A stretch of 64,000 nt of DNA, from positions 30,938,001 to 31,002,000 of the forward strand of contig NC_086123.1 in assembly GCF_963921235.1 (NCBI RefSeq). Reading direction: 5' to 3'. Shown one piece after another: positions 7,411 to 51,540 of the stretch (the first letter of the stretch is position 1; the number at the start of each line of letters is the position of its first letter). Below the pieces are notes generated by a model that was not told where the DNA came from, made no database searches, and was given only the letters and a program-made list of their open reading frames with translations. Origin of the DNA: Mobula hypostoma. Lineage: Eukaryota. Both the position numbers and the translations under genes were made by a program.

Positions 7411-9091
7411 TTAATAATCCCTTGGACCAGGTTCCAACTCAGCAAACTTCATAGTGGCCAAAAACACTGATGAATTGCGATCAATGTAACCTCTCATATG
7501 ATTTTGTCCCGGACCACAATAACAAGGGTCGTCCCATTCCGACCTAGTTTTCTCTCGCAAGAGCTTAGTAGGAGGGGGAGGGGTAGTAACCGCAGTGTTA
7601 TTGCAAAACTTCCTACAGTACCCCACCATCTCCAAGAGCCTTCTGAGGGCCCTCTTGTCTGTCGGGGTTGGGAGGTCAGCGATAGCCTGCACTGTAGCTT
7701 GCATCGCTGCCAGCTGCCCCTGTGTCACCACAATTCCCAGGTAAGTGACCTTCGTGTGGACGAACTCATTTTTTTTCAAGGTTCACTATCAAGCTGGCTT
7801 CAGACAGCCGTATTAAATTGCCAATACACACCTCTGTGTTCGTCAGCCCTTTAGTCACTGAATTACTCATTCTATATGAATGTTGCTTACTAGGCTGACC
7901 CACCCAACGTCCCAGTTCTTTGCATCGCCTCGGGACAATCAAACACACGGGTGCGAGTCGTTTAATTACTTCCCCTAAAGAGTCGCTTTGTTCGGGGATT
8001 AAGGGAGAGACCTTATCAGCAGACCTGGCCAAAACAATAGCCTTCTCTCATCTGGTCGATACCATACTCACCTTTTCAAAATGGTTTTTCTCTCTTATCG
8101 GGGGGACCCTAGCTTCATTGATTTCCACGCTAACACCGACTAGGTTTGTTAGCATATCAAAAGCCTGTGACCGTCCCAGTTCGCGTCGGCCATAATCAAT
8201 AACATCCTTCCCCCTGGGCAGCCGGTAAACCTCTTTCATGATTCCACCAACCGTTCCCTCCAGTACCGCAAAATGTCCACCGGGGGGTACCTTGTGGGCC
8301 AGGTTAAAAATCTCATCCTCATAACTCTTTTGCACCACCCCCCATTCCTCATCTGCGGGTACTGTACTTGATTTCCCTTTCTTCCTTAGCACTTCCTCCT
8401 CCGCACAATAGCCTACTAGTTCCCTTGTTAAGTCTGTGTCAGAGAGAGCTGTCTCTGCCAAAACCATCAGCCCCTCGTCTCGCTCCTGCGTCTGCACAAA
8501 TTCTTTCCTGGCTACTGCTATGTCCGTCCCAGCTCCCTCACTACCTCTTGTCTCACTACACTCCTTCTTTTCACTTTCTACCCCCTTCTCGTACAAGGTT
8601 GGCAGAAACGTCTCAGCTAAATTCACTATCGCGGTCCCGTGATGAACCTGTGAGTCCATGGGCGGGGCCTCAATGCTGGCAGGCTGACCTGTCAATCTCA
8701 CGACTGGGAACACGATTCCCCCGGCGATGTCATTACCGAGCAAGACTTCCACGCCTTTCATCGGTAATTCGGACCTCACCCCGATCGTGACTAGTCCAGA
8801 GACCAGGTTGCTTTGTAAGTGTATCTGGTGCAAAGGGACTGACTCTGTCCCTTCCCCAACACCTTTGACCTTTACCTCCCCAGTCTGGGTCTCTGAGCTA
8901 AACTCTAATACGCTCTTCAGTATTAGTGACTGACACGCTCCCGTGTCTCTCCAGATCCGCACTGGAACTGGTTTTAACCCCTCCTTCACTGACATCAATC
9001 CGGCCGAGATAAACTTCTCGCGCCCTTCCTGAACTTTGGCAGACCTGTCCTTCCCTAGCGGTTCGTGTACCAGCTCGATACAGCCAGTCAA
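7411..9091 (-). pseudogene. pol: pol remnant: aspartic protease, integrase HH remnant, RT C-terminal remnant
   Basis: RDTGACQS and LLGND (protease); AHKVPPGGHF (integrase Zn-finger histidines); VTYLG...PTPTDKRALRRLLEMVGYCRKF (RT). No YxDD or DDE core seen. Confidence 0.75.
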
Positions 9092-9103
9092 AATTGCCGT
9101 TTT

Positions 9104-10286
9104 TCATTTTCCCGTCTCCTTCTTTGGGGCAAAGCACCTGGACGCAAAGTGTCCGACTTTCCCGCAATTATAACAGACGACCCCAGGAGACTTCCTGCCA
9201 GACTGCTCCCGGTCTACCTTATCCTTCTCACTAGTCCCCGGCTTACTTTCTGACTTTTCTGGCGGACTCTCCCCGCCGTCCTGACTACCCTTCTGGTAGC
9301 CTTTACTCCGGGCAAACTTCATTTTATGCGTCAACGCATACTCATCCGCTAACTTAGCAGTTGCGGCTAACGTGGCTGCCTCTTTCTCATCTAGGTAGGG
9401 TCTCATACCCTCAGGGACACAACCTTTAAACTGCTCAATCAGGATCAGCTGTAGCAGTCTGTCATAATCCTCCTCTACCCCTTTTGAGGCGCACCAACTC
9501 TCACAATATGTCTGCATCTCACGGGCAAACTCTAAATACGTGCGGTCCCACTGCTTCCTCGCATTCCGGAACCTCTGCCGGTATGCCTCCGGGACCAACT
9601 CATAAATCCTGAGGATGGCCTCTTTCACCGCCTCATACCTCTGAGCATCTTCCTTGGACAAAGCGGAGTAAGCTTGTTGGGCTTTCCCTTTCAGTACACT
9701 CTGAAGTAAAACCACCCACTTATCCCTCGGCCAGTCCTGACTTATAGCCACTTTCTCGAAATGGAGAAAGTACCGATCCACGTCGGTATCGTCAAACGGG
9801 GGAACCAGCCTAACCTCCTGGGTCGCCCGGAACCCTCCACCTTGGTTCGGCACGAGCCCTGCTCGGCCCTTATCCTTAACTTCTCCAGCTCAAATTCCCT
9901 TTCCTTCTGTTTCTCCAACTGCCTCTCTCTCTCTCTTGCCTTTCTAACTCTCTCTCCTTCTCTTCTCGCTGCAACTGTCTATCCCTCTCTTTCTCTTCTC
10001 GCTCCAACTGCCGTACCCGGAAGTCGTGCTCGAGTCTCAGTTTTTCAAGCTGCACCTGTACCGCGTCTCCAGCAGGTTTTTCAATAGACACCACCTCCAG
10101 CTCGCCTTGGGGAAACACACCTTTAGATACATAGTGCTCTACGATAGCTCTGTGTATCTCCTCTCTCCTCATTGTCGACTTCCCCTTAGCAAGATTCAAC
10201 AGTTTGGCCACAGCTACCAATTCCGATTTCCTGGCATCCTCTAATGCCTCCAAGGTCGGCGCCTTTATAAATTCCTCAGCCTCCAT
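9104..10286 (-). pseudogene. gag: gag (frameshifted): coiled-coil, SCAN/capsid-like domain, CCHC knuckle
   Basis: PEAYRQRFR...LILIEQFKGCVP and CYNCGKVGHFASRC motifs; split across ORFs 9876-10286 and 9104-9853. Confidence 0.85.
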
Positions 10287-12362
10287 TTCTGCTGTTTGTC
10301 TTTTCTTTCTTTCGGGAATTTTGACCCAATCAATTTACTCCATCCCAAATTTAGCGTTCAAAATCGCGGACGAGAACCCCACTTATGTTACGTACCCCGT
10401 AACTGGGTTGCCAAACCAGCAGAAATGGATCGCTCAGTTGGAATCTGGATTACTAGAACTAAGAAAGTTTTATTAAAGAAACAAGCAACATAGTACTCTA
10501 ATTAAAAGGATAACGAATGCAACAATTCAGCAATGATAAACATACATGTACACAGAATTAAGATAACAGGATCAATCAAGCTCTATCGTTGTCTAGGGGC
10601 AAATGACCAGTTTCAAAGTGACACAAAGTTCAGTTCAATTTAGATCAGTTCACAGTAATCGTTGCCATGGCGATGGACAGTGGGGGGGGGGAGGAGAGAG
10701 AGCAAAACGAATGAATATTCAACACAGCTTCTACACACAGACCTTCGCAGTCAGCTGTCGGGCGAGTCCTTTGTAATGTCATCTGAGGTCACCGACCGTG
10801 ACCCCTCCATTTCCAGATACGATCGTTTCCCTGTGCTGAACCTGGCACCCAGGCAAGGGTGGACACACACCAGGTTCCCGCCGATCGTGCTTTTCCACCC
10901 TGTGTGTTTTATGGCTTGATCCCGCGATCAGCCGTCCAAAAGCTTCCCACCGACTTGTGAGAGGCGCACCGCTTCCAGGGTCTCGTTACCTCGGGTGTCG
11001 TGTGTGTGTCCTGCCTTAGCGAACCTGTCCCTTTTTATCCCCCTGCTGGGGTATTGCCTGTCCATCACTTCAAACAGTTCAGGGTTCAAAGGGGGAGCCG
11101 CTCTAGACAGCGCTCTCTCCCGTCCCTTCATTACACATCTCCAAATCGCCTGTCCATCACTTCAAACAGTTCAGGGTTCAAAGGGGGAGCCGCTCTAGAC
11201 AGCGCTCTCTCCCGTCCCTTCATTACACATCTCCAAATGCTGCTCCATTGTCTTCCTTATCTCTCTCTCTCCCGAAGACAGGTGGCAGACCAACTGCTGA
11301 TCACACAGGACAGCTAACATCTATCTATGTGTATTCTTGTCACACTGCCTAATAGGGGTCGAAAATATTGACAGTGCTGTTCGCTGCACTTTTCTATTGT
11401 CCATGGTGGGTTAAGACTGTAAAAGACATGTTGAGGTGAGTTTAACAGGTGTCATTCGTTCATTAGCATAGCTAACATTATTTAAACTAGCCGGCTAGCT
11501 GCTCAGGAGCTACTCTATTGCAGACATCCCACCTCTCCCAGAAGTTCCAGGAGTCTCCCGCAAATTGATGGTGCTACCTCCCTGAAATGACTTTTTGCAG
11601 GGTGGGATGTCTGTATTCTTGCACATGATTCAAATGCTACAATCAAACTTTGGTCAAGATACTTAATCTCTTACCAAGGTCTATAGACCTAGATGAAAGC
11701 AGTCACACAGAAATACCAGTGTCATTACATTTAGACTTTTATTAAAAAATTATTTCAAATCATCGTGGAAATTTCAACAGTGAAAATTGCAAAACATTTA
11801 GAACTTCAACTAATCTGATTTCATTAAATTTTAATGCTAAAATGAAAATAAAGATCCATTGGAAGAACACAGTAACTGAAGCAATTAATTCTTGAGGGCA
11901 TTAAGGTAAGCAGTAAGTCATCTCTCCCTCCCCCATCAAACCCAATCTTTTCAGTGGGATTTGTTTTAAAACATTGTAAATTGGAATTGCCACAACAGTT
12001 ATTTCTGGGTCTCTGAGTGAGACCCGTTTTGTGTGGGAAGTCATAGACCATCATATTGTGATCAGCCATTCGGAGTTACATTGATCTGAAGAAGAGGTGC
12101 AGGTTGCCAGGTTTCCTTTGATCTTGTTAATATCTGGCCTATGCAAAACTGACAACCCATGTTTTCCAGGCTAAGAAGGCAACAAGGTGACAAGCGTCAA
12201 ATCTCGATGGGAATTTATGTCATTGCCCGACAGACACCCCATCAGTACAGCATTAATACAGAGCGGAAATCGGTCCTTTGTCCAACTTGTGAATGCCAGT
12301 GTGGAACGTAGCAGATAGTCAGGATAAAGTAACAAAGTGCTAACGACAGAATATAGGAATGC

Positions 12363-12390
12363 AATAAAATACCAATAAATTATTTTTAAT
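12363..12390. terminator. Bidirectional poly(A) signal cluster (repeated after every ISG15-like gene)
   Basis: ATTAAA on minus strand (12385-12390) about 30 nt after the stop of A; two AATAAA on plus strand (12363, 12374) after the convergent terminal exon. Confidence 0.6.
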
Positions 12391-12421
12391 CACAGTTCAC
12401 TCAACCGTCCGCGGGAGTAAA

Positions 12422-13114
12422 TCAGCCTCCACGTAGCCGGAGCAGCAGAGAGATGGTGGTTAGTGGTCTGATGTTGTAGTCGGAGAGCAATCGCCCATCC
12501 TCCAACTGTTTGCCCTCGTAAACCAGGCGCTGCTGGTCGGGTCTGACCCCCTCCTGCCGATGGACCCGCTCTTTAAAATTCTGCACGGACTCAGAGGGCA
12601 TCACATCGTACGTCGAGGTTTTCCCCTTTTCATTCAGGAGAAATATCTGCATGGATTCCTCTTTGCTAACCAACATGATGGTGGTTTGTGGTCTGATGTT
12701 GTAGTCGGAGAGCAATCGCCCATCCTCCAACTGTCTGCCCTCGTAAACCAGGCGCTGCTGGTCGGGTCTGACCCCCTCCTGACGATGGACCCGCGCTTTA
12801 AACTTCTGCACGGACTCAGAAGGCATCACGTCGTACGTCGAGGTTTTCCCCTTGTCATTCCGGAGAAATATCTGCATGGATTCCTCTTTCGTGACCAGCA
12901 ACATGACGGTGGGGCTGGGGTTGAGGTTGTAGTAGCTCAGACTTCTCTGGTCTTGCATCTCCACGCTTTGGCCATTTTGCACCATCAGACGCTGTTGGAA
13001 AATGGGCACCTTGGTCTTTTCCTGGATTTTCATCTTGAGAGTCGACACTTGAATGGAAGGGTCGACATCAAGGTCGAAACCATCGCCGCTGATAAACCTC
13101 ACCTGAAGTCTCAT
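12422..13114 (-). CDS. ISG15: ISG15-like modifier A, three Ubl domains (230 aa), C-terminal LRLRGG
   Basis: Divergent N-terminal Ubl followed by two near-identical Ubl domains. The [11 protein letters not shown] motif resembles human ISG15 RNNKGRSSTYEV. Ends LRLRGG-stop, with no internal GG. Splice acceptor 12 nt upstream of the ATG; ISRE promoter upstream. Confidence 0.85.
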
Positions 13115-13126
13115 CTTGTCAAATCG

Positions 13127-14534
13127 CTGTGGAGAAAGGAGAAGTGATTAGAGAGTTTTTACATCAGCAGGGCATGAATATGAGGTATTAATATGGCATT
13201 GCCTATAATATCAACATAATTAGACTATTTACTAAGATCTGTAGACAAGCGGCAAAAGACAAACCACTCTTTCCCTCGCAGTTCTAAAGGAATTTTGAGC
13301 CGCAATACTGACAATTGACGGGAGAGGGACTCCGTGAGCCGGTGGGTTTAAACATTTTTGAACTTGATTCGATTAGCGGCAAAAAAATGTGTAAGTGTCT
13401 CATTGGGACCGTAGTAAATGTGCAACTTGTTTAGATTTCTAAGCCAGGACCATTCTAACCGCCGCTTAATAGGGGAAATAGGGGAATAGGTGACTTTTGT
13501 CACATCGCGTTAATGGTGCACCGGGGAGAGCATTCGGACTTGTTGCATCACCGTCTGATATGGAGGGGCCACGACACAGGGTCAGAAAAAGCTGCGGAGG
13601 GTGGTAAACTCATCCAGCTCCATCATGGGCACCAACAGAGAGTATCTTCAAAAGCTAATACCTCACGGAGAAGGCATCGATCATTCTGGGCCTGCAGGTC
13701 ATGCCCGCTTCTCATTGCTACCACCAGCGAGGAGCCTGCGGACTCACGCTCAACGTTTCATGAACAGATGAACTACTGAACAGTACTTTTGCTTCACACA
13801 CACGCGTAAATGTATACTGTATATACTGTATATGTGTGTGTGTGTATGCTATTATAATTTATATTTATGTTATGTACAGTACTGCCGCCGCAAATTGCCA
13901 AGTTTATCGATTTAAGTTAGTGGTGGTCGTCACAATTCTGATTCTAAATCGATTCTACTGCGAATGAACTCCATTTTACTTTCAACCAAACATTCGCGCC
14001 CCTGCTTTCCTGCAGAGAAAGTGTTCACTAACGACCCAGATTTCCCGAGTCACTCAATTCACGCGCAAATTATTGTCGTGACATGAACGAAGATTTCATG
14101 CACCGTTTTAACAAGACCGTCACTCTACATCAGCCGATTGACGGGTTTCACCGAACCGTGAGCCTATCAATCCGAGAAGCAGGAGTGGCCATTCGGCCTG
14201 CACCGCTATTCAATGATATCCCCGATGATCTTTTACCTCGCCGCTAGTTGCCAACATTTGTCGCATATCTATTGCCCCCTTTCTGTAAAGTTAGTTTTCT
14301 ACTAACTTGTTCTCGCCCCGCGTTTTGTCAGCGGTAGAGACTACATTTCCCACCCGGTTCACAGGATGCTAGTAATTTAAATTATATCGTCAATGTTGTA
14401 AACAGGTAGATAAAAATGAGAACTTTGAGATAATCAAATAAAGTCTTACAATTTTTGTCGACAGTACAGGAAGTCAGGACGAATCTGAAGAAAATCTGAT
14501 CCGCAGCTTTTTTTCTTTGCCCTTTATTCCGCAC
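13127..14534 (-). other. 5'UTR intron of gene A (equivalent acceptors at 21793, 31459, 41039, 50761, 60363)
   Basis: Minus strand reads ctaatcacttctcctttctccacAG|cgatttgacaagATG (branch point, polypyrimidine tract, AG). The candidate donor G|GTGCGG at 14534 is conserved in all units including the diverged left unit, but is less certain than the acceptor. Confidence 0.65.
13515..13780 (+). mobile_element. Old Rex1/Babar-derived fragment in the intron of each gene
   Basis: gagagcatt...tgcatcaccgtctgatatggag parallels the ESIL.GCITTWYG region of the element at 26105. Confidence 0.5.
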
Positions 14535-14637
14535 CGACTTTCAGCTCTGGTCCGGGTAAATCAATAGAAATTCTCCGGCTGCTGCTGATCGGTATCCCCG
14601 CACCTGCAACTCTGCGTCTCTCCGCCTCCCCCGGCTC

Positions 14638-14828
14638 GCTTTATCTCTGCCCCCGTTTCTGAACGTCACCGCGCCGCTGGGCTGATCTCACGGCCCGCTG
14701 TCACTGTGTTGACAAACAAACCAATCAGGTTCCAGCCGAAGTTTCGTTTCCGAAAAATTCCCCGCAGTAAATTGGAAACGTGTTCGCTCTGTTACAGGGT
14801 TCAACGCTATCGGCTGATTCACTTTCGG
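14638..14828 (-). promoter_or_regulatory. Interferon-responsive promoter of A
   Basis: ISRE AGTTTCGTTTCC at 14740-14751; abutting NF-kB-like GAAAAATTCCCC at 14752-14763; CCAATCA at 14721; IRF-E-like TTCACTTTCGG at 14818-14828; GATAAA TATA-variant at ~14640 (minus strand). Confidence 0.75.
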
Positions 14829-16548
14829 ATTCCGTTCTGGTGTCAGCATCTGCAACAATAACACAGGCACAGGGAAGTCGAGAATGTGAAACCCGATCTT
14901 GAAACGGAAAATAACCTTAAACGTGTCATCTCCGAATACATTTATCTGGTTCATTCAGTGACAACCTAAGTGATAAAATGCACGAATCCACCGAAACAAA
15001 ACAACACAACTGGGCCCAATCCACATCACCTCTATTTCCCCATCATTCTTGCCCAGATCCCCGTGGGCTGAGCAGCCGTAGTGTTACCCCGTTTCCCGAG
15101 CTTCACCCCATCCAGCATATCAATCTTTTCAACGTCCACCATCTCCACCGTGATTCCACAACCCGTCACACATTCTGCTCTGCACCTCTTTCTGCTCTCG
15201 GCATGGACCCCTCGGTGCGTGACTTACAGGTCCTCAGATCCCTCACCCCACCCCACCTCCCCCACCCCCACCAGCGGAACTTCATAGGATGTGTTGCAGC
15301 TGACCTCTCCAATGGTCAGCCCGCCTCCATCACCCACCAGGGCCCTAAAGGGAGACCCAGGAGATCATACAGACGCCAGGAATCTTGAAGAGCAGCCAAA
15401 ATAGTTGGGGGAACTCTGGAGGTCAGGCAGCATCATTGAAGGGAAATGAACATCCATAATTCACTCGAGATCCTTCATCAGGATTGGAAAGAAAGGGGGC
15501 TGAAGCCAGAATAAGGAGGAGGGATGAGAGAGAGGTGGAGTATAAATTAGTGAGGGGGAGAATGGATGGGTGTGGGAGTGGGGATGATGTGAGAAGACGG
15601 GAGGTGATCAGTGTAAGCACTAAGGGGCTGAAGAAGAAGGAATCTGATCGGAAGGGGCAGGAGACCATGGAAGGAGATGGGGAACCTGGGAGGGTCATGA
15701 GGGTGGGGGAGGAAAGAGGTGAGAGGGTCACCAAAGTAGGAAAAAAACCTAAAGGGGGAGTGTTGACCAGAGGTTAGAGGTTAATGCCGTCAGGTTAAAG
15801 ACTACTCAGGCCGAGAATGAGATATTGCTCCCCCAGATTGTGCTTGGCTTCATCGTGGCAGTGTCCTAAACTGCCCTTCCAGGTGAGGCGGACATTCACG
15901 TGCACCTCCCTTGGCTTTCTTTATTGTATCAAGGGCTTCTGATGTGGTGTCCTCTATTTTGGTGAGACCAGGTGGAAATTAGACTGGGAATCTCTTATCA
16001 GATTCCATCATCTGCAGCTCTTTATCACCTCCACCCATCACTTCCCAGCTTCTGTCCCCATGTTCACTCTCCCTCCTCCATCCGCCTATCATCCCTTCTC
16101 ACCTGGATCCATCTGGTGTTTAGGACAGCAATAAAGGAACTCCGTTCCCATCGGTACAAAAGGTTTCTTCATTGCTGTTTCTGTGACAATTGCTTATTGA
16201 CCAGTCACGGTTCTTATCCATGAGCTGAACACCTGAACCTGGAGGTGCGCTGGTCCACTGTTACTTTGCCCTCTAACCTTTATCTGTTTGACACAGGTGA
16301 CCCTACCAAGAGCCAAAGCAAAAGGCCTGACTCCAGCCAACGTAACTCTCTGGGTCATTGAGGCACACAAGTCTCCAAGCCCTATGACAAGGTTGTGGTC
16401 CTCTTGGAATAGATTTACCTGAGCAATCATTAACTACTTGAGAGGTCAGGTGGACATTGCTAATGATCAGAATAAGCATAATAAAAATGTGGAATCATAT
16501 AATTTGCAATAATGATTAAGTTAATATGCGGAATTATCTTCTGGCATG

Positions 16549-18604: not shown

Positions 18605-20765
18605 CTTTTTTAATCTTTTTATTAGTTTTCAAGTTCATATACATAATAACAATAGTGATACAAAGAGATTTGAAATACCTTACTGTTAAAAACATATAGA
18701 AAAAAGACTACAAAATAGTACATGTGTAATAGACTTCCAAACTCTTGATATAGTTAATCATGAAGAAAAAAAGAAATAAAAAGAAAAGGATATCGCAAAG
18801 GAAAAACCCCAAAAAAACAACAAAAAAACTGAAAATAGAACTAATTGTTAAACCCCCCAAAAATACAAACAGAACAAAATATTGCTGAACCAATATATTA
18901 GATCGAATAATTAGATCAATTCATTAATGTCATCAACTCTGCTCCTCTATTCGTATATTCTAAGTTAATAAAAAGGATTCAAAAAAGATCAAACTACATC
19001 ATATGAAAACGTTGAATAAATGGCTTCCAAGTCTCTTCAAATTTAACTGAAGGATCAAAAATGACCCTTCTGATTTTTTCTAAATTTAAACATGATATCA
19101 TTTGGGAAAACCATTGAAATGTAGTAAGGGTGGTTGGTCTCTTTCCAATTCAATAAAATGGATCTTCTGGCCATTAATGTGACAAATGCAATCATCCAAC
19201 AGGCTGAAGAAGATAAAGAGCTATGTTCCATCATTGGAAAACCAAAAATTGCCGTAATAGGATGGGGTTCTAAATCAAAATGCACAACTATTGAAATAAT
19301 ATCAAAAATATCTTTCCAAAATTTTTCAAGAGAGGGCAGGACCAGAACATATGAGTCAAAGAAGCCACCTCAGAGTGACATCTGTCACAAACAGGATTTA
19401 CGTGGGAGTTAAAACGAGCTAGTTTATCTTTAGCCATGTGGGCCCTATGCAACACCTTAAATTGTATCAGCGTATGTTTAGCACATATAGAGGAAGAGCT
19501 AATGGAAAAATTTTCTCCCATTTCTCTAAAGGTAAGTGAAGTTGAAGTTCCATTTCCCATTCATTCTTAATTTTATCGGACATACCTGGCTGTATTTTCA
19601 TAATTATATCATAAATAGTTGCTATTAATCCCTTCTTTTCTTTTTAAATCTTTTTCATTAATTTTCAAAATTATAAACAAAATAACAATGTTGATACAAA
19701 GAGATTGGAATAATCTTATTATTAGTAAACATATACAAAAAAGATTTCAAATAACATAGGTATAATAGACTTCCAAACTCATGATGAAATTAACCATAAA
19801 GAAGAAAAAGAAATAAAAAGAAAAAAATATATATAAAGAACTCCCCCCCCCAAAAAAAGAACCAAATACTAAACCCCAAAAAAGCAAACGGATATTAATC
19901 CCTTCTGATTAGGATTTAAACCTAAAATTTTTCCCATGATATCAGTAGAGCGTAAAATCAGAAAGGTAGACAGTGTGGCATGTAAAAAGATTCTTATTTG
20001 TAAGTATCTAAAAAAATGGGATCTCGGCAAGTTATATTTATTAGATAACTGTTCACAAGACATGAAACAGTTATTCAAAAATAAATCATGGAAACATGTT
20101 ATACCCTTCATTTTCCATATCAAAAAGGCTTGATCCTTTGGAGAAAAATTAGATATAATAGTGCTTGATAATATAAATTTGTTCAAACCAAAAAAATTAC
20201 TAAATTGGAACCATTTTCATAAAGTATATTTAATTATTGGATTAACCATTTGTTTATTCAATTTAGAAAACACAAAGGAAAGTGAAGTTCCTAAAATAGA
20301 AACCGGTGAAAACCCTTGTACAGAGTAACCTTCAAGGTCTACCAATTGTGCACTTGGAATTATATCCCAATCTTGTGTCCAAAATATTAAATATCCAATA
20401 TTAATTGCCCAGTATTAAAATCATAAATTCCGCATTGCTAAACCACCATCTTTCTTCGACTTCTGTAAATATTTTTTACTTAACCTAGGATTTTTATTCT
20501 GCCATATATAAGATGAAAGTTTAGAATCAATAGTATCAAAAAAAGATTTAGGAATAAAAATTGGTACCACGTGAAATAGATATAAAAATTTTGGTAGAAT
20601 AATCATTTTAATAGTATTGATTCGGCCAATCAATGGTAGAGACAATGATGACCATTCAGTAAGCAATTGTTTAACCTGACTAATTAACGATAAAAAATTG
20701 AGCTTGAATAAGTCCTTATGTCTCTTATCAATTTTAACCCCCAAGTAAGTAAAAAATTCAGTAAT
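18605..20765 (-). mobile_element. 5'-truncated L1-clade LINE with ~20-bp TSD and a nested L1 3'-end insertion (19637-19892)
   Basis: GRINTIKMIILPKFLYLF and CDRC..HMFWSC zinc finger. TSD cag(a/g)ttgccagagttccttt at 18585-18604 and 20766-20785; nested TSD tattaatcccttct. Confidence 0.85.
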
Positions 20766-20835
20766 CAGGTTGCCAGAGTTCCTTTGATTTTGTTAATATC
20801 TGGCCTCTGCAAAACTGACTACCCATGTTTTCCAG

Positions 20836-20977
20836 GCTAAGAAGGCAACAAGGTGACAAGCAACAAACCTCGATGGGAATTTATGTCGTTGTCCAACTGA
20901 CACCCCATCAGTACAGCATTAATACAGAGTGGAAATTGGTCCTTTGTCCAACTTGTGAATATCACTGTGGAACGTAA
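20836..20977 (+). pseudogene. Copy of convergent terminal exon (further copies 30727-30868, 40298-40439, 50029-50170, 59622-59763)
   Basis: ttttccAG|G acceptor and open 46-codon frame retained in all six copies. Confidence 0.55.
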
Positions 20978-21066
20978 CAGATAGGCAGGGTAAAGTAACA
21001 AAGTGCTAATGACAGAATTTAGGAATGCAATAAAGTACCACTAAATTATATTTAATCACAGTTCTC

Positions 21067-21780
21067 TTAACCATCAGCGGGAGTAAATCTGCCTCCACCT
21101 AGCCGGAGCAGCAGAGAGATGGTGGTTCGTGGTGTGATGTTGTAGGCGGAGAGCAATCGCCCATCCTCCAACTGTTTGCCCTCGTAAACCAGGCGCTGCT
21201 GTTCGGGTCTGACCCCCTCCCGCCGATGGACCCGCGCTTTAAACTTCTGCACGGACTCAGAGGGCATCACGTCGTACGTCGAGGTTTTCCCCTTGTCATT
21301 CAGGAGAAATATCTGCATGGATTCCTCTTTGCTAACCAACATGACGGTGGTTTGTGGTCTGATGTTGTAGTCGGAGAGCAATCGCCCATCCTCCAACTGT
21401 CTGCCCTCGTAAACCAGGCACTGCTGGTCGGGTCTGACCCCCTCCTGCCGATGGACCCGCGCTTTAAACTTCTGCATGGACTCAGAGGGCATCACATCGT
21501 ACGTCGAGGTTTTCCCTTTGTCATTCCGGAGAAATATCTGCATGGATTCCTCTTTCGTGACCAGCAACAGGACGGTGGGGCTGGGGTTGAGGTTGTAGTA
21601 GCTCAGACTTCTGTCGTCCTGCATCTCCACGCTTTGGCCATTTTGCACCATCAGACGCTGTTGGAAAATGGGCACCTTGGTCTTTTCCTGGATTTTCATC
21701 TTGAGTGTCGACACTTGAATGGAAGGGTCGACAGCAAGTTCGAAACCATCGCCGCTGATAAACCTCACCTGAAGTCTCAT
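21067..21780 (-). CDS. ISG15: ISG15-like modifier B, three Ubl domains (237 aa), altered C-terminus LRLGGG-RFTPADG
   Basis: Paralog of A with CGT>GGT (R>G) in the LRLRGG motif and TGA>AGA stop loss, giving a 7-aa extension. ORF, acceptor and promoter intact. Confidence 0.78.
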   Translation of the reverse strand: MRLQVRFISGDGFELAVDPSIQVSTLKMKIQEKTKVPIFQQRLMVQNGQSVEMQDDRSLSYYNLNPSPTVLLLVTKEESMQIFLRNDKGKTSTYDVMPSESMQKFKARVHRQEGVRPDQQCLVYEGRQLEDGRLLSDYNIRPQTTVMLVSKEESMQIFLLNDKGKTSTYDVMPSESVQKFKARVHRREGVRPEQQRLVYEGKQLEDGRLLSAYNITPRTTISLLLRLGGGRFTPADG

Positions 21781-27048: not shown

Positions 27049-28162
27049 ATAGAAACATAGAAACATAGAAAATAGGTGCAGGAGTAGGCTATTCGGCCCT
27101 TCGAGCCTGCACCGCCATTTATTATGATCATGGCTGATCATACAACTCAGAACCCCGCCCCAGACTTCCCTCCATACCCCCTGATCCCCGTAGCCACAAG
27201 GGCCATATCTAACTCCCTCTTAAATATAGCCAATGAACTGGCCACAACTGTTTCCTGTGGCAGAGAATTCCACAGATTCACCACTCTCTGTGTGAAGAAG
27301 TTTTTCCTAATCTCGGTCCTAAAAGGCTTCCCCTCTATCCTCAAACTGTGGCCCCTCGTTCTGGACTTCCCCAACATCGGGAACAATCTTCCTGCATCTA
27401 GCCTGTCCAATCCCTTTAGGATCTTATACGTTTCAATCAGATCCCCCCTCAATCTTCTAAATTCCAACGAGTACACGCCCAGTTCATCCAGTCTTTCTTG
27501 ATATGAAAGTTCTGCCATCCCAGGAATCAATCTGGTGAACCTTCTTTGTACTCCCTCTATGGCAAGGATGTCTTTCCTCAGATTAGGGGACCAAAACTGC
27601 ACACAATACTCCAGGTGTGGTCTCACCAAGGCCTTGTACAACTGCAGTAGTACCTCCCTGCTCCTGTACTCGAATCCTCTCGCTATAAATGCCAGCATAC
27701 CATTCGCCTTTTTCACCGCCTGCTGTACCTGCATGCCCACTTTCAATGACTGGTGTATAAGGACACCCAGGTCTCGTTGCACCTCCCCTTTTCCTAATCG
27801 GCCACCATTCAGATAATAATTTGTTTTCCTATTTTTGCCACCAAAGTGGATAACTTCACATTTATCCACATTAAATTGCATCTGCCATGAATTTGCCCAC
27901 TCACCCAACCTATCCAAGTCACCCTGCATCCTCTTAGCATCCTCCTCACAGCTAACACTGCCACCCAGCTTCGTGTCATCCACAAACTTGGAGATGCTGC
28001 ATTTAATTCCCTCATCCAAGTCATTAATATATATTGTAAACAACTGGGGTCCCAGCACTGAGCCTTGCAGTACCCCACTAGTCACCGCCTGCCATTCTGA
28101 AAAGGCCCCGTTTATTCCCACTCTTTGCTTCCTGTCTGCCAACCAATTCTCCACCCACACCA
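27049..28162 (-). mobile_element. 5'-truncated CR1 LINE (RT C-terminal part); copy 46338-47451
   Basis: GVLQGSVLGPQLFTIYINDLD...KFVDDTK; (catagaaa)n tail; ATAAT TSD. Confidence 0.9.
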
Positions 28163-28183
28163 ATAATGATGTAGGAAAGGGAG

Positions 28184-30041
28184 CAGCCTTGGCAGTCAAA
28201 GTGAAGGATAATCCAAAGAGCTTTTACAAGTATATTAAGAGCAAAAGGATTGTAAGGGATAAAATTGGTCCTCTTGAAGATCAGAGTGGCCGGCTTTGTG
28301 CGGAACCAAAAGAAATGGGGGAGATCTTAAATAGGTTTTTTGTGTCTGTATTTACTAAGGAAGCTGGCATGAAGTCTATGGAATTGAGGGAATCAAGTAG
28401 TGAGACCATGGAAAGTGTACAGATTAAAAAGGAGGAGGTGCTTGCTGTCTTGAGGAAAATTAAAGTGGATAAATCCCCAGGACCTGACAGAGTGTTCCCT
28501 CGGACCTTGAAGGAGACTAGTGTTGAAATTGCGGGGGCCCTGGCAGAAATATTTAAAATGTCGCTGTGTATGGGTGAAGTGCCGGAGGATTGGAGAGTGG
28601 CTCATGTTGTTCCATTGTTTAAAAAAGGATCGAAAAGTAATCTGGGAAATTATAGGCCGGTGAGTTTAGCGTCAGTAGTAGGTAAGTTATTGGAGGGAGT
28701 TCTAAGAGACAGAATCTACAAGCATTTGGATAGACAGGGGCTTATCAGGGAGAGTCAACATGGCTTTGTGCGTGGTAGGTTATGTTTGACCAATCTGTTG
28801 GAGATTTTCGAGGAGGTTACCAGGAAAGTGGATGAAGGGAAGGCAGTGGATATTGTCTACATGGACTTCAGTAAGGCCTTTGACAAGGTCCCGCATGAGA
28901 GGTTAGTTAGGAAAATTCAGTCGCTAGGTATACATGGAGAGGTGGTAAATTAGATTAGACATTGGCTCAATGGAAGAAGCCAGAGAGTGGTGGTACAGAA
29001 TTGCTTTTCTGAGTGGAGGTCTGTGACTAGTGGTGTGCCACAGGGATCAGTGCTGGGTCCATTGTTATTTGTCATCTATATCAATGATCTGGATGATAAT
29101 GTGGTAAATTGGATCAGCAAGTTTGCTGATGATACAAAGATTGGAGGTGTAGTAGACAGTGAGGAAGGTTTTCAGAGCCTGCAGAGGGACTTGGACCAGC
29201 TGGAAAAATGGGCTGAAAAATGGCAGATGGAGTTTAATACTGACAAGTGTGAGGTATTGCACGTTGGAAGGACAAACCAAGGTAGAACATACAGGGTTAA
29301 TGGTAAGGCACTGAGGAGTGCAGTGGAACAGAGGGATCTGAGAATACAGATACCAGATTCCCTAAAAGTGTCATCACAGGTAGATAGGGTCGTAAAGAGA
29401 GCTTTTGGTACATTGGCTTTTATTAATCAAAGTATTGAGTATAAGAGCTGGAATGTTATGATGAGGTTGTATAAGGCATTGGTGAGGCCGATTCTGGAGT
29501 ATTGTGTTCAGTTTTGGTCACCAAATTACAGGAAGGATATAAATAAGGTTGAAGGAGTGCAGAGAAGGTTTACAAGGATGTTGCCGGGACTTGAGAAACT
29601 CAGTTACAGAGAAAGGCTGAATAGGTTAGGACTTTATTCCCTGGAGCGTAGAAGAATGAGGGGAGATTTGATAGAGGTATATAAAATTATGATGGGTATA
29701 GATAGAGTGAATGCAAGCAGGCTTTTTCCACTGAGGCAAGGGGAGAAAAAAACCAGAGGACATGGATTAAGGGTGAGGGGGGAAAAATTTAAAGGGAACA
29801 TTAGGTGGGGCTTCTTCAAACAGAAAGTGGTGGGAGTATGGAATGAGCTGCCAGACGAGGTGGTAAATGCGGGTTCTTTTGTAACATTTAAGAATAAATT
29901 GGACAGATACATGGATGGGAGGTGTATGGAGGGATATGGTCCGTGTGCAGGTCAGTGGGACTAGGCAGAAAATGGTTCGGCACAGCCAAGAAAGGCCAAA
30001 AGGCCTGTTTCTGTGCTCTAGTTTCTATGGTTTCTATGGTT
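28184..30041 (+). mobile_element. 5'-truncated CR1 LINE (RT, one nonsense codon); copy 47473-49330
   Basis: NYRPVSL, DFSKAFDKV, GVPQGSVLGP, FADD motifs; (tttctatgg)n tail. Confidence 0.9.
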
Positions 30042-30978
30042 GAGTGAGGTAAAAGTAACACAGTGGGGAATAGTGACAGTTAAACTTCAATATTTACTTT
30101 GGATTAAATAGGAAAGAATGCAGAATAGCTAACATAATGATTCCATTGTGTAAAGTGTTGAATGTGAATTGGGGTTTTTGAGAATCTTGTACATGGTTCA
30201 AACGCCACAATCAAACTTTGGTCAAGATACTTCATCTCTTACCAGGGTCTACAGAATTAGATTAAAGCAATCACACAGAAATGCCAGTGTTCCTGCATTT
30301 AGACTTTTATTAAAAAAATCATTTCAAATCATATTGGAAATTTCAACAATGAAAATTGCAAAACATTTAGAACTTCAACTAATCTGATTTCATTAAATTT
30401 TAATGCTAAAATGAAAATCAAGACCCATTGGAAGAACACAGTAACTGAAGCAAACAATTTTTGAAGTCGTTAAGTCATCTCCCCCTCCCCCATCAAACCC
30501 AATCTTTTTAGTGGGATTTGTTTCAAAACATTGTAAATTGAAATTGCCACAGCAGTTATTTCTGGGTCTCTGAGTGAAACCCATTATATGTGGGAAATCA
30601 TAGACCATCAGATTATGATCAGCCATTCGGAGTTACATTGATCTGAAGAGGAGGTGCAGGTTGCCAGAGTTCCTTTGATATTGTTAATATCTGGCCTCTG
30701 CAAAATTGACAACCCATGTTTTCCAGGCTAAGAAGGCAACAAGGTGATAAGCGACAAACGTCGATGGGAATTTATGTCATTGTCCGACAGACACCCCATC
30801 AGTACAGCATTAATACAGAGCGGAAATCGGTCCTTTGTCCAACTTGTGAATGTCAGTGTGGAACGTAGCAGATAGACAGGATAATGTAACAAAGTGCTAA
30901 CGACAGAATATAGGAATGCAATAAAATACCAATAAATTATTTTTAATCACAGTTTTCTCAACCGTCTGCAGGAGTAAA

Positions 30979-31446
30979 TCAGCCTCCACGTAGCCGGAGC
31001 AGCAGAGAGATGGTGGTTAGTGGTCTGATGTTGTAGTAGGAGAGCAATCGCCCATCCTCCAACTGTTTGCCCTCGTAAACCAGGCGCTGCTGGTCGGGTC
31101 TGACTCCCTCCTGCCGATGGACCCGCTCTTTAAACTTCTGCACGGACTCAGAGGGCATCACGTCGTACGTCGTCGTTTTCCCCTTGTCATTCAGGAGAAA
31201 TATCTGCATGGATTCCTCTTTCCTGACCAGCAACATGACGGTGGGGCTGGGGTTGAGGTTGTAGTAGCTTAGACTTCTGTCGTCCTGCATCTCCACGCTT
31301 TGGCCATTTTGCATCATCAGACGCTGTTGGGAAATGGGCACGTTGGTCTTTTCCTGGATTTTCATCTTGAGTGTCGACACTTGAATGGAAGGGTCGACAT
31401 CAAGTTCGAAACCATCGCCGGTGATAAACCTCACCTGAAGTCTCAT
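30979..31446 (-). CDS. ISG15: ISG15-like modifier C, two Ubl domains (155 aa), LRLRGG
   Basis: Canonical ISG15 size and architecture; C-terminal domain about 55% identical to ubiquitin by manual alignment; ISRE promoter. Confidence 0.88.
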
Positions 31447-32130
31447 CTTGTCAAATCGCTGTAGAGAAAGGAGAAGTGATTAGAGAGTTTTTACACCAGA
31501 TGTGCATGAACTATGATGTATTAATATGGCATTGCCTATAATATCAACACAATTAGACTATTTACTAAGATCTGTAGACAAACGGGAAAAGACAGACCCC
31601 TCTTTCCCAGCAGTTCTGAATGTGTGACAGGAATTTTGAGCCGCAATACTGACAATTGACGGGAGAGGGACTCCGTGAGCCGGTGGGTTTAAACATTTTT
31701 GAACCTGATTCGATCAGCAGCAAAAAAATGTGTAAATGTCTCATTGGGACCGTAGTAAGTGTGCAACTTGTTTAGATTTCTAAGCCAGGACCATTCCAAC
31801 CGCCGCTTAATAGGGGAAAAAAAATCACTTTTGTCACATCGCGTTAATGGTGTACCGGGGAGAGCATTCGGACTTGTTGCATCACCGTCTGATATGGAGG
31901 GACCACGACACAGGGTCAGAAAAAGCTGCGGAGGGTGGTAAACTCATCCAGCTCCATCATGGGCACCAACAGAGGGTATCTTCAAAAGGTGATGTCTCAA
32001 GGAGAAGGCATCGATCATTCTGGGCCTGCAGGTCATGCCCACTTCTCATTGCTACCATCAGCGAGGAGCCTGAAGACTCACGCTCAACGTTTTAGGAACA
32101 GATGAACGAATGAACAGTATTTTTGTCTGA

Positions 32131-32163
32131 CACACACACACACACACACACACACTCGTATAT

Positions 32164-32197
<34 letters not shown>
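32131..32197. repeat. (CA)n-TATA-(TG)n palindromic microsatellite in the intron (also ~13795-13845, 41712-41770, 61035-61082)
   Basis: Direct observation. Confidence 0.9.
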
Positions 32198-32994
32198 CTA
32201 TTATAATTTATATTATATGTTATGTACTGCATTGTACTGCCGCCCCAAATTGCCAAATTTATCGATTTAAATTAGTGATCACCCGAATTCTGATTCTAAA
32301 TCGATTCTGCTGAGAATGAACTCCATTTACTTTCAACCAAACATTCACCCTCCATCCCCGCATTCCTGCACAGAAAGTGTTCACTCCCGACCCAGACTTC
32401 CCGAGTCACTCAATTCACACGCAAATTATTGTCGTGACATGAACGAAGATTTCATGCACCGTTTTAACAAGACCGTCACTCTACATCAGCCGATTAACGG
32501 GTTTCACCGAACCGTGAGCCGATCAATCTGAGAAGCAGGAGTGGCCATTCGGCCTGCACCGCTATTCAATGATATCCCCGATGATTCTTTACCTCGCCGC
32601 TAGTTGACAACAATTTGTCTCGTATCTATTGCCTCTTTCTGTAAAGTTAGTTTTCTACTAACTTGTTCTCGCCCCGCGTTTTGTCAGCGGTAGAGACTAC
32701 ATTTCCTGCCCGGTTCAGAGGATCTTAGTAATTTAAATTATATTGTCAATGTTGTAAATAGCTAGATAAAAATGAGAACTTTGAGATAATCAAATAAAGT
32801 CTTACAATTTTTGTCGACAGTACCGGAAGTCAGGACGAATCTGAAGAAAATCTGATCCGCAGCTTTTTTTCTTTGCCCTTTATTCCGCACCGACTTTCAG
32901 CTCTGGTCCGGGTAAATCAATAGAAATTCTCCGGCTGCTGCTGATCGGTATCCCCGCTCCTGCAACTCTGCGTCTCTCCGCCTCCCCCGGCTCG

Positions 32995-33185
32995 CTTTAT
33001 CTTCTGCTCCCGTTTCTGAACGTCACCGCGCCGCTGGGCTGATCTCACGGCCCGCTGTCGCTGTGTTGACAAACAAACCAATCAGGTTCCAGCCGAAGTT
33101 TCGTTTCCGAAAAATTCCCCGCAGTAAATTGGAAACGTTTTCGCTCTGTTACAGGGTTCAACGCTATCGGCTGATTCACTTTCGG
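32995..33185 (-). promoter_or_regulatory. Interferon-responsive promoter of C
   Basis: ISRE 33097-33108, kB-like 33109-33120, CCAAT, IRF-E-like site. Confidence 0.75.
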
Positions 33186-33496
33186 ATTCCGTTCTGGTGT
33201 CAGCATCTGCAACAATAACACAGGCACAGGGAAGCCGAGAATGTGAAGCCCGATCTTGACCGGAAAATAACTTTAAACGTGTCATCTCTGAATACATTTA
33301 TCTAGTTCATTCAGTGACAACGTAAATGATGAAATGCACGAATCCACCCAAACAATACAACACAACTGTGCCCAATCCACATCACCTCTATTTCCCCATC
33401 TTGCTTGCCCATCTCCCCGTGGGCAGTCAGTCGTAGTGTTACCCCGTTTCCCGAGCTTCACCCCATCCAGCATATCAATCTTTTCAACGTCCGCCA

Positions 33497-36400
33497 TAGA
33501 ACATAGAACACAGAATAGTACAGCACAGTACAGGCCCTTCGGCCCACAATGTTGTGCCGACCCTGAAACTCTGCCTCCCATATAAGCCCCCACCTTAAAT
33601 TCCTCCATATACCTGTCTAGTAGTCTGTTAAACTTCACTGGTGTATCTGGCTCCACCACTGACTCAGGCAGTGAGTTCCACGCACCAACCACTCTCTGAG
33701 TAAAAAACCTTCCTCTAATATCCCCCTTGAACTTCCCACCCATTACCTTAAAGGAATGTCCCCTTGTATTGAGCAGTGGTGACCTGGGGAAGAGGCGATG
33801 GCTATCCACTCTATCTATTCCTCTTATTATCTTGTACACCTCTATCATGTCTCCTCTCATCCTCCTTCTCTCCAAAGAGTAAAACCCTAAATCTCTGATC
33901 ATAGTGCATACTCTCTAAACCAGGCAGCACCCTGGTAAATCTCCTCTGTACCATTTCCAATGCTTCCACATCCTTCCTATAGTGAGGTGACCAGAACTAG
34001 ACACAGTACTCCAAGTGTGGCCTAACCAGAGTTTTATAGAGCTGCATCATTACATCGTGACTCTTAAACTCTATCCCTCGACTTATGAAAGCTAACACCC
34101 CATAAGCTTTCTTAACTACCCTATCCACCTGTGAGGCAACTTTCAGGGATCTGTGGACATGTACCCCCCGATCCCTCTGCTCCTCCACACTAACAAGTAT
34201 CCTGCCATTTACTTTGTACTCTGCCTTGGAGTTTGTCCTTCCAAAGTGTACCACCTCACACTTCTCTGGGTTGAATTCCATCTACCACTTCTCAGCCCAC
34301 TTCTGCATCATATCAATGTCTCTCTGTAATCTTTGACAATCCTCTACACTATCTACAACACCACCAACCTTTGTGTCGTCTGCAAACTTGCCAACCCACC
34401 CTTCTACCCCCCCCACATCCAGGTCGTTAATACCAGTAGTCACAATCCTCCTATCTGAATGTACTCCCTCCACCACGACCCTCTGCCTTCTGCAGGCAGG
34501 CCAATTCTGAATCCACCTGGCCAAACTTCCCTGGATCCCATGCCTTCTGACTTTCTGAATAAGCTTACCATGTGGAACCTTGTCAAATGCCTTACTAAAA
34601 TCCATACCGATCACATCCACTGCAATACCCTCATCTATATGCCTGGTCACCTCCTCAAAGAACTCTATCAGGCTTGTTAGACATGATCTGCCCTGCACAA
34701 AGCCATGCTGACTGTCCCTGATCAGACCATGATTCTCTAAATGCCCAGAGATCCTACCTCTAAGAATCTTTTCCAACAGCTTCCCACCACAGATGTAAGG
34801 CTCACTGGTCTATAATTACCCGGACTATCCCTACTACCTTTTTTGAACAAGGGGACAACATTCGCCTCCCTCCAGTCCTCCGGTACCATTCCCGTGGACA
34901 ATGAGGACATAAAGATCCTAGCCAGAGGCTCAGCAATCTCTTCCCTCGCCTTGTGGAGCAGCCTGGGGAATATTCCGTCATGCCCTGGGGTCTTATCCGT
35001 CCTAATGTATTTTAACAACTCCAGCACCTCCTCTCCCTTAATATCAGCATGCTCCAGAACGTCACCCTCACTCATATTGTCCTCACCGTCATCAAGTTCC
35101 CTCTCATTGGTGAATACCGAAGAGAAGTATTCATTGAGGACCTTACGCACTTCCACGGCCTCCAGGCACATCTTCCCACCTTTATCTCTAATTGGTCCTA
35201 CCTTCACTCCTGTCATCCTTTTTTTCTTCACATAATTGAAGAATGCCTTGGGGTTTTCCTTTACTCCACTCGCCAAGGCCTTCTCATGCCCCCTTCTTGC
35301 TCTTCTCAGCCCCTTCTTAAGCTCCTTTCTTGCTTCCCTATATTCCTCAATAGACCCATCTGATCCTTGCTTCCTAAACCTCATGTATGCTGCCTTCTTC
35401 CACCTGACTAGATTTTCCACCTCACTTGTCACCCATGGTTCCTTCACCCTACCATTCTTTATCTTCATCACTGGGACAAATTTATCCCTAACATCCTGCA
35501 AGAGATCTCTAAACATCGACCACATGCCCATAGTACATTTCCCTGCAAAAACATCATCCCAATTCACACTCGCAAGTTCTAGTCTTATAGCCTCATAATT
35601 TGCCCTTCCCCAATTAAAAATTTTCCTGTCCTCTCTGATTCTATCCTTTTCCATGATAATGCTAAAGGCCAGGGAACACTGGTCACTGTCCCCCAGATGC
35701 TCACCCATTGAGAGATCTGTGACCTGACCCGGTTCATTACCTAGTACTAGATCTAGTATGGCATTCCCCCTAGTCGGCCTGTCCACATACTGTGACAGGA
35801 ATCCGTCCTGGACACACTTAACAAACTCTGCCCCATCTAAACCCTTGGAACTAATCAGGTGCCAATCAATATTAGGAAGTTAAAGTCACCTATGATAACA
35901 ACACTGTTATTTTTGCATCTTTCCAAAATCTGCCTCCCAATCTGCTCCTCTGTATCTCTGCTGCTACCGAGGGCCTATAGAATACTCCCAATAGAGTAAC
36001 TGCTCCCTTCCTGTTCCTGACTTCCACCCATACTGACTCAAAAGAGGATCCTGCTACATTACCCACCCTTTCTGTAGCTGTAATAGTACCCTTGACCAGT
36101 AATGCCACCCCTCCTCCCCTTTTTCTGCCCTCTCTATCCCTTTTAAAGCACTGAAATCGGGGAATATTGAGAATCCATTCCTGCCCTGGTGCCAGCCAAG
36201 TCTCTGTAATGGCCACTACATCATAATTCCATGTATGTATCCAAGCTCTCAGTTCATCACCTTTGTTCCTGATGCTTCTTGCATTGAGGTACATACACTT
36301 CAGCCCTTCTACCTTACGACCTTTACACCCTTTATTCTGCTTCTCTTTCCACAAAGCTTTCTATATTTTAGATCTGGCTTTACTCCATGCACTTCTTTCA

Positions 36401-49330: not shown

Positions 49331-50280
49331 GAGTGAGGTAAAAGTAACACAGTGGGGAATAGTGACAGTTAAACTTCAATATTTACTTTGGATTAAATAG
49401 GAAAGAATGCAGAATAGCTAACATAATGATTCCATTGTGTAAAGTGTTGAATGTGAATTGGGGTTTTTGAGAATCTTGTACATGGTTCAAACGCCACAAT
49501 CAAACTTTGGTCAAGATACTTCATCTCTTACCAGGGTCTACAGAATTAGATGAACGCAATCACACAGAAATGCCAGTGTTCCTGCATTTAGACTTTTATT
49601 AAAAAAATCATTTCAAATCATATTGGAAATTTCAACAATGAAAATTGCAAAGCATTTAGAACCTCAACTAATCTGATTTCATTAAATTTTAATGCTAAAA
49701 TGAAAATAAAGATCCATTGGAAGAACACAGGAACTGAAGCAAACAATTCTTGAGGTCGTTAAGGTCAAGCAGTAAGTCATCTCCCCATCCCCCATCAAAC
49801 CCAATCTTTTTAGTGGGATTTGTTTCAAAACATTGTAAATTGAAATTGCCACAGCAGTTATTTCTGGGTCTCTGAGTGAAACCCATTATATGTGGGAAAT
49901 CATAGACCATCAGATTATGATCAGCCATTCGGAGTTACATTGATCTGAAGAGGAGGTGCAGGTTGCCAGAGTTCCTTTGATATTGTTAATATCTGGCCTC
50001 TGCAAAATTGACAACCCATGTTTTCCAGGCTAAGAAGGCAACAAGGTGATAAGCGACAAACGTCGATGGGAATTTATGTCATTGTCCGACAGACACCCCA
50101 TCAGTACAGCATTAATACAGAGCGGAAATCGGTCCTTTGTCCAACTTGTGAATGTCAGTGTGGAACGTAGCAGATAGACAGGATAATGTAACAAAGTGCT
50201 CACGACAGAATATAGGAATGCAATAAAATACCAATAAATTATTTTTAATCACAGTTTTCTCAACCGTCTGCAGGAGTAAA

Positions 50281-51411: not shown

Positions 51412-51540
51412 NNNNNNNNNNNNNNNNNNNNNNNNNNNNNNNNNNNNNNNNNNNNNNNNNNNNNNNNNNNNNNNNNNNNNNNNNNNNNNNNNNNNNNNNN
51501 NNNNNNNNNNNNNNNNNNNNNNNNNNNNNNNNNNNNNNNN
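51412..51540. other. Assembly gap (129 N)
   Basis: Run of N at the position of the intronic CA/TG palindrome. Confidence 1.

Follow-up and report, generated by a model that had tools for sequence, protein, structure and literature searches.

A three-domain ISG15-like gene formed by an in-frame duplication in the ISG15 array of the devil ray Mobula hypostoma

Results

Organization of the locus

The window analysed in this study is a stretch of 64,000 nucleotides of the Mobula hypostoma genome (RefSeq assembly GCF_963921235.1, contig NC_086123.1, positions 30,938,001 to 31,002,000), and positions given below are counted from its first letter unless stated otherwise. It carries six ISG15-like genes, A to F, all on the minus strand. 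Genes C to F encode 155 amino acids each (at 30979, 40559, 50281 and 59883), and gene A encodes 230, exactly 75 more. The features of gene A, whose domain borders were set by splitting at the MQIFL starts, and the position of gene B are as follows.

12422-13114, minus strand: gene A coding sequence, 230 amino acids, arranged Ubl1-Ubl2'-Ubl2 and ending in LRLRGG-stop (open reading frame, Pfam, AlphaFold2)
12878-13114, minus strand: gene A domain 1, amino acids 1-79, ISG15-type N-terminal Ubl with the KEES linker
12653-12877, minus strand: gene A domain 2, amino acids 80-154, the extra C-terminal-type Ubl, its tail swapped for the domain-1-type MLVSKEES
12422-12652, minus strand: gene A domain 3, amino acids 155-230 and stop, the C-terminal Ubl with LRLRGG
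12653-12685, minus strand: gene A internal junction, a hybrid of the C-terminal-domain beta5 (...PQTTI) and the domain-1 beta5 with linker (MLVSKEES)
12452-12901, minus strand: two 225-nt tandem repeat units, 12452-12676 and 12677-12901 (repeat search)
21067-21780, minus strand: gene B, 237 amino acids, three-domain layout as in gene A, tail LRLGGG, stop lost

The first-pass annotation of this DNA had described gene A as an open reading frame with three Ubl domains, made by an in-frame 225-nt duplication, with a middle domain that ends like domain 1 instead of in Gly-Gly and with an architecture common to gene B. Its description proved right in every detail and its interpretation only in part, since the alternative of a collapse to two domains is rejected below. 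Pfam detected three ubiquitin-family stretches in the protein (E 2.5e-57), and the repeat search returned a single exact tandem direct repeat of 225 nt at a spacing of 225, with 94% identity between the units. The internal junctions read ...KEES/MQIF without Gly-Gly, the domain-1-style end of the middle domain being evident in both DNA and protein, and gene B has the identical layout. Domain 3 differs from the C-terminal domain of gene E by two amino acids, and the tails are identical.

Gene A opens with an N-terminal ISG15-type Ubl and closes with a ubiquitin-like C-terminal Ubl, in which LRLRGG runs directly into the stop codon; gene B lacks this tail. The nearest relatives of the gene A protein are elasmobranch ISG15s, and solved ISG15 chains match its residues 3-148 (E about 1e-25). 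Since genes A and B have three Ubl domains each rather than exactly two, they are classed here as an ISG15 variant and not as typical members. No description of a three-Ubl ISG15 was found in a literature search, and gene A is a genuine, previously undescribed structural variant of a well-known modifier.

The ISG15 array and its annotation

A 120-nt probe across the junction of domains 2 and 3 was compared with the whole 3.48-Gb genome. The full junction occurs at two sites, genes A and B only, and half-matches place at least 10 copies of ISG15 in the interval from 30.935 to 31.030 Mb. The array consists of roughly 9.6-kb units that are 92-99% identical, and it contains at least eight intact two-domain ISG15 copies. 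The three-domain form is thus so far limited to two edge copies in the array of one species.

Several further features of the array were observed. A higher-order repeat of 19.3 kb is present, in which C and D (27147-36354) match E and F (46436-55679); the D and F flanks are 99% identical, and both copies of the repeat contain LINE-type reverse-transcriptase reading frames. Gene F is otherwise nearly identical to gene D and ends in LRRRGG instead of LRLRGG (CTA>CGA, 59883-59903); the altered residue is the equivalent of ubiquitin Leu73, a position of importance in protease recognition. LTR-retroelement-type reading frames lie on the minus strand at 7411-10286, just downstream of the gene A 3' flank, a gag-like one with a CCHC zinc knuckle being followed by protease/polymerase-like ones. 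A run of 129 N bases (51412-51540) lies upstream of gene E. Before the window start and downstream of gene A is a more divergent two-domain paralog, Z (G000:C78:30935749-30936007), whose M. birostris counterpart, P0131, ends in LRLCGG. As Z-type and main-type ISG15 genes both occur in Hemitrygon, the split between them is older than the divergence of these ray lineages.

The exact 230-amino-acid protein of gene A was absent from a collection of 15 billion proteins, and RefSeq holds its sequence only within XP_062890250.1 (P0161, 433 amino acids), a read-through model of A plus Z. RefSeq models of this kind, of 310-561 amino acids and named 'polyubiquitin-B-like', string adjacent ISG15 genes together by splicing and exist in M. 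hypostoma (P0010, P0161, P0162), M. birostris (P0163, P0164) and other elasmobranchs (P0017, P0072, P0074, P0083, P0168). Cleavable poly-ISG15 was considered for the 310-amino-acid and 461-amino-acid models of the last group, which have exact LRLRGG/MRLQV junctions, and these were treated instead as fusion models of neighbouring genes and not as uninterrupted reading frames, because the Hemitrygon 310-amino-acid gene spans 5.75 kb and the Mobula equivalents hold intron-derived linkers. The 'polyubiquitin-B-like' chains are therefore probably read-through or homology-guided fusion models and not poly-ISG15 precursors; as such, they mask gene A as well as the true number of genes. None of the RefSeq proteins P0078, P0131 and P0163-P0166 of M. 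birostris has the three-domain arrangement.

Origin and polarity of the duplication

At the DNA level, domain 2 of gene A ends in CCA CAA ACC ACC ATC and passes into the domain-1 codons ATG TTG GTT AGC AAA GAG GAA TCC. The crossover site is accordingly a hybrid, ...ACC ACC (A/G)TC / ATG TTG..., after which one codon (CTG) is lost relative to a clean 228-nt exchange, and gene B keeps the domain-1 GTC codon at the crossover point. These hybrid codons are as expected from unequal exchange or slippage at the ACC-(A/G)TC microhomology of the two beta5 strands, which supports the earlier proposal of an unequal crossover between the last beta-strands of the two domains.

A tree built from C-terminal-type domains groups the two middle domains, those of A and B, as a clade (support 97/93) that falls within the Mobula C-terminal domains; these middle domains have derived residues in common that are absent from every other copy. 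All of the retrieved outgroup ISG15s (other rays, sharks, chimaera, coelacanth, teleosts and mammals) have two domains. Together, these results indicate that the three-domain form is a gain and not the ancestral state. The reverse possibility in the first-pass annotation, namely that the two-domain genes arose by collapse of a three-domain form, is contradicted by both the domain-level tree and the outgroups and was rejected. On these sequence comparisons, the three-domain form was gained once and afterwards copied along with its gene.

The last domain appears to have had a separate history. Domain 2 of A is nearest to domain 2 of B, at a distance of 7 nt, and domain 3 of A has its nearest counterparts in the C-terminal domains of genes E and C (6-7 nt of 201), a pattern that suggests later gene conversion of the last domain of A by neighbouring genes. 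The flanks of A and B diverge by 6.3%, more than the 1.8% that separates A from the M. birostris transcript; from this, one would expect either that the origin is old and the form was lost elsewhere or that gene conversion spread it.

In an array of such similar units, the extra 225 nt might have been produced by mis-joined reads of adjacent paralogs. An assembly artefact of this kind is nonetheless very improbable, because the two repeat units of gene A differ at about 6% of sites while remaining exactly in frame, and because A and B, 8.6 kb apart, each carry the structure with substitutions of their own, as the seven differences between their middle domains show. It is likewise at odds with the derived residues of the middle domains and with the 3-nt loss and changes at the junction, which occur in no paralog.

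Gene B, a probably decaying partner

In gene B (21067-21110), CGT>GGT changes the tail to LRLGGG and TGA>AGA removes the stop, which adds seven amino acids, RFTPADG. The middle domain has Cys in place of Arg in the conserved QQRL, dN/dS against C-F is 1.3-1.6, and homology of the 3' flank to the other copies ceases about 300 nt past the stop (20760-21066). Judged from these changes, gene B is probably decaying and most likely becoming a pseudogene.

The codons after the stop of gene A (12401-12424) and at the equivalent sites of C-F read FTPADG-stop, with synonymous differences between A and C-F. This segment may be what is left of a C-terminal pro-peptide in an ancestor, exposed again in gene B.

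Three-domain ISG15 in other species

Searches with the whole gene A protein, as well as exhaustive searches with domain 1, were swamped by polyubiquitin; since their scores sum over repeats, they cannot list ISG15s by domain number. In a search scored on residues 105-205 only, a contiguous Ubl-KEES-Ubl was found nowhere outside the A/B cluster. When a teleost ISG15 was used as the query, one three-domain protein was recovered, P0315 of the sablefish Anoplopoma fimbria (237 amino acids), which carries the name 'polyubiquitin-like'. Its gene (L014:5001-5714) is one continuous 714-nt reading frame that contains a tandem repeat, also in frame, with 240-nt units that are 90% identical, and it adjoins another ISG15 copy.

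Like gene A, P0315 is an ISG15 of the Ubl1-Ubl2'-Ubl2 type that ends in LRLRGG, without Gly-Gly at its internal junction (LVNQPAT). The two differ in the repeat unit and in the breakpoint, which lies after LSLRL in the sablefish and inside beta5 in gene A. The two lineages have been apart since the base of the jawed vertebrates, and the sablefish sequence, which is annotated automatically only, represents an independent origin of the same architecture. The three-domain architecture therefore recurs, and the search for three-Ubl LRLRGG proteins elsewhere that the first-pass annotation had called for leaves the architecture of A and B real, with its uniqueness softened. No paper on P0315 was found in the literature search.

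Some other sequences were noted in these searches. The copy upstream of the sablefish gene (L014:24-356) is frameshifted in appearance, and P0393 of the orange-spotted grouper Epinephelus coioides (178 amino acids) has an internal, partial duplication of 23 amino acids where its second domain begins. The multi-Ubl proteins P0129, P0121 and P0137 were set aside as unrelated and not ISG15.

Gene signals and selection

The sequence around the gene A reading frame contains the following elements.

13127-14449, minus strand: 5'UTR intron, GT..AG, with spliced joints in paralog and ortholog RNA contigs and the acceptor 12 nt upstream of the ATG
14450-14646, minus strand: non-coding exon 1, 5' limit approximate (RNA contig pieces 14450/14469-14606/14646)
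14740-14751, minus strand: ISRE-like element GGAAACGAAACT, identical in six of six genes, about 100 nt upstream of exon 1
11617-12421, minus strand: gene A 3' flank and 3'UTR, colinear with C-F over 805 nt, with ATTAAA and AATAAA in common

The ISRE-like element GGAAACGAAACT has one spacer base where two are usual, and no match to the strict ISRE pattern with two spacer bases was found near the ISG15-like genes. Genes A and B have an additional GAAACGGAAA core, and gene A has a TATA-like box. The intron acceptor is identical across all six genes, the strong donor ATT/GTAAGA is intact in A, and paralog RNA contigs extend at least 466 nt past 12300. By its sequence, gene A is a structurally complete gene that is presumably interferon-responsive.

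The history of the donor site was also followed across the array. The ancestral donor ATT/GTAAGA (14449-14468 and equivalents) is intact in A, B, C and E and destroyed (G>T) in D and F. It is in use in the transcripts of organisms B and C, two of the sources of the RNA runs described below. A new donor 18 nt upstream, created by T14468G, is present in C-F and is used by Mobula hypostoma transcripts.

The dN/dS of A against C-F is 0.44-0.57, compared with 0.29-0.48 among C-F themselves. When the three domains of A were pooled, synonymous change was in excess (P=0.036, on small counts). The middle domains of A and B differ by four synonymous and three non-synonymous changes (dN/dS 0.20, P=0.045, again on small counts). 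The signal of selection on A that these substitutions suggest is weak and in part reflects the partner lineage.

ISG15 transcripts in RNA contigs

Four RNA runs, two from Mobula hypostoma (organism A) and one each from organisms B and C, were compared over 12300-15100; they were taken as RNA since the 5'UTR splice is present in their contigs. Two-domain ISG15 transcripts were abundant, paralog contigs having a word depth of 37-75. The long X8 and X9 contigs jump exactly 225 nt, from 12596 to 12822, the X6 contig exits at 12672 with a loose end that is the end of domain 1, and the X7 contig stops short of the domain boundary. Thus, the contigs that cross the boundary (X8, X9 and X6, from three runs and two species) represent two-domain transcripts only. 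Depth was zero across 12676-12769 in all four runs, and at the sites unique to gene A every contig carries a different letter.

Translated, the organism-A contig X8 equals unit one of the RefSeq model P0162, a copy lying beyond the window. The organism-B contig encodes a two-domain protein such as is annotated in M. birostris, and its nearest gene within the window is A (11 differences in 602, against 17-20 for C-F).

No contig of the three-domain form or of a segment specific to A or B was thus present among the four runs, and the absence of a transcript, which the first-pass annotation had named as counting against its reading, has not been cleared. Because minor variants are lost from assembled contigs and the tissues had presumably not been stimulated, the result is a non-detection of the three-domain transcript and not its absence.

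Predicted structure

An AlphaFold2 model of the gene A protein, built on a 15-row alignment, has three beta-grasp domains with a mean pLDDT of 89.5 and without any segment under 50. Residues 145-150, the chimeric beta5, form a regular strand; the relative orientation of the domains is uncertain at a pTM of 0.59. With Foldseek, a pair of domains from the model aligned to the ISG15 of human and mouse with a target-normalised TM of 0.73-0.81 and an rmsd of 2.5-3.3 A. Linear tri- and tetra-ubiquitin were the only solved chains that aligned over all three domains, and this alignment was loose (rmsd 13-17 A).

Discussion

Relation of gene A to known modifiers

This study describes an ISG15-type gene in which a second C-terminal-type Ubl stands between the usual pair, so that the N-terminal domain is farther from the conjugating tail than in canonical ISG15. 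To our knowledge, ISG15 is treated as an invariably two-domain modifier. Apart from the extra domain, gene A resembles canonical ISG15: its N-terminal and C-terminal domains, the hinge of KEES type and the LRLRGG tail are those of the neighbouring two-domain genes. With bona fide ISG15 copies it also has in common its place in the tandem array, the 5'UTR intron and the ISRE-like element of the promoter.

Polyubiquitin and linear (Met1-linked) ubiquitin chains are likewise head-to-tail beta-grasp repeats in one polypeptide. Their units, however, end in RGG and are cut free, whereas the junctions of gene A are KEES linkers and its domain 1 is not ubiquitin-like in sequence. The identity of A to ubiquitin repeats is about 45%, the best polyubiquitin stretches covering residues 79/80-230 and not domain 1; with this identity and no internal Gly-Gly, the assignment of A as polyubiquitin was ruled out. 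The tandem Ubl proteins FAT10 (UBD) and OASL offer another comparison, since in them several Ubls act together as one piece: FAT10 is conjugated with both of its domains as a unit, and the chicken OASL tandem Ubl matches the gene A model with a target-normalised TM of about 0.72. Both belong to other families and have two domains only, and the OASL pair belongs to a larger, enzyme-like protein instead of being a free modifier.

Formation and fate of the three-domain gene

As a mechanism, we propose microhomology-mediated unequal exchange or replication slippage in a two-domain ISG15 gene, by which the codons for beta5 of the C-terminal Ubl became linked to those for beta5 of the N-terminal Ubl, thereby duplicating one Ubl and the linker in frame. 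This exchange would have occurred a single time, in a gene copy at that edge of the Mobula ISG15 array which is less homogenised, and the resulting three-domain gene would then have been duplicated to give A and B. The sequences themselves show the DNA architecture, its gain, its single origin and the intact signals of A, and it is inferred that A is transcribed, induced and conjugated as one unit and that recognition by E3s or viral antagonists is altered. Taken together, this is our best overall explanation, which we hold tentatively and at a little under an even chance.

A quite possible alternative, which we hold to fall short of even, is that the duplication is real and has no role, A and B being copies at the edge of a redundant array that are silent or hardly expressed; the reading frame would then have stayed open only because the event is young, and gene B would show the future of gene A. 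This neutral reading is favoured by the missing A/B-type contigs in the four RNA runs, set against the depth of the paralogs, by the presence of so many intact two-domain copies, by the annotation of M. birostris, which lists no three-domain gene, and by gene B itself, with its altered tail, lost stop, elevated dN/dS and truncated 3' homology. Moreover, the repeat units differ at only about 13 positions, and an open frame would be expected by chance. It is less easily reconciled with the intact regulatory, splice, tail and poly(A) signals of A, with a dN/dS like that of expressed-type paralogs and with the prevalence of synonymous change between the middle domains of A and B. Contigs from probably unstimulated tissues, furthermore, cannot show absence, and the sablefish keeps an equivalent architecture open at a unit divergence of 10%.

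Possible function of the gene A product

If gene A is translated, its product would be a Ubl1-Ubl2'-Ubl2 protein of about 26 kDa. The E1 and E2 steps of ISG15 conjugation depend on the C-terminal domain and the LRLRGG tail, the N-terminal domain aids E3-mediated transfer, and ubiquitin-type proteases require Gly-Gly at the scissile bond. Because the C-terminal Ubl and tail of A are essentially unchanged and the internal junction is without Gly-Gly, the product, if made, would go through activation, conjugation and removal as one unit of three domains. Specifically, given a C-terminal domain nearly identical to that of its neighbours, we infer that it could be charged via UBA7, passed on by UBE2L6 and an E3, and removed by USP18. 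USP18 requires the C-terminal domain of ISG15 only (Basters et al. 2017 as reviewed in PMC6985271).

It is also conceivable that the three-domain protein would be mainly unconjugated, intracellular or secreted, or would serve as a decoy for USP18-like or viral ISG15-binding proteins. The decoy would act via the two C-terminal-type domains, and gene B, with its altered and capped tail, would be an obligate free form. Free and secreted functions of ISG15 are established (PMC6985271; for a teleost example, PMC3445607); A presents two copies of the surface read by USP18, and B cannot expose a canonical LRLRGG without processing. The perfect LRLRGG directly before the stop of A is, on the other hand, a conjugation-ready state, the changes in B (dN/dS above 1, truncated 3' flank homology) suit decay more than design, and no expression was seen in the RNA contigs. 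A free or decoy form thus seems quite improbable.

Returning to A as a conjugated unit, proteins that read both domains or the spacing between them, such as E3s and viral antagonists, may respond differently to it. Viral ISG15-binding antagonists often clamp both domains, and the role of the N-terminal domain and hinge is still debated. On a stronger and rather unlikely version of this reading, A would be interferon-induced and conjugation-competent, and the architecture would have recurred in ray and teleost because the extra domain alters engagement by E3s, deISGylases and viral antagonists.

Implications

If that version were true, three-Ubl ISG15 would be a recurrent evolutionary solution in host-virus conflict. 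With its conjugating domain unchanged and with two origins, in the devil ray and, by its own duplication, in the sablefish, the natural three-domain ISG15 would offer a ready-made reagent for probing how domain number and spacing influence transfer by E3s, removal by USP18 and the way in which viral antagonists recognise the modifier. Automatic annotation conceals such genes under 'polyubiquitin-like' names or in read-through fusion models. If it is not expressed, gene A would still illustrate how new domain architectures arise when unequal exchange acts on tandem arrays of immune genes.
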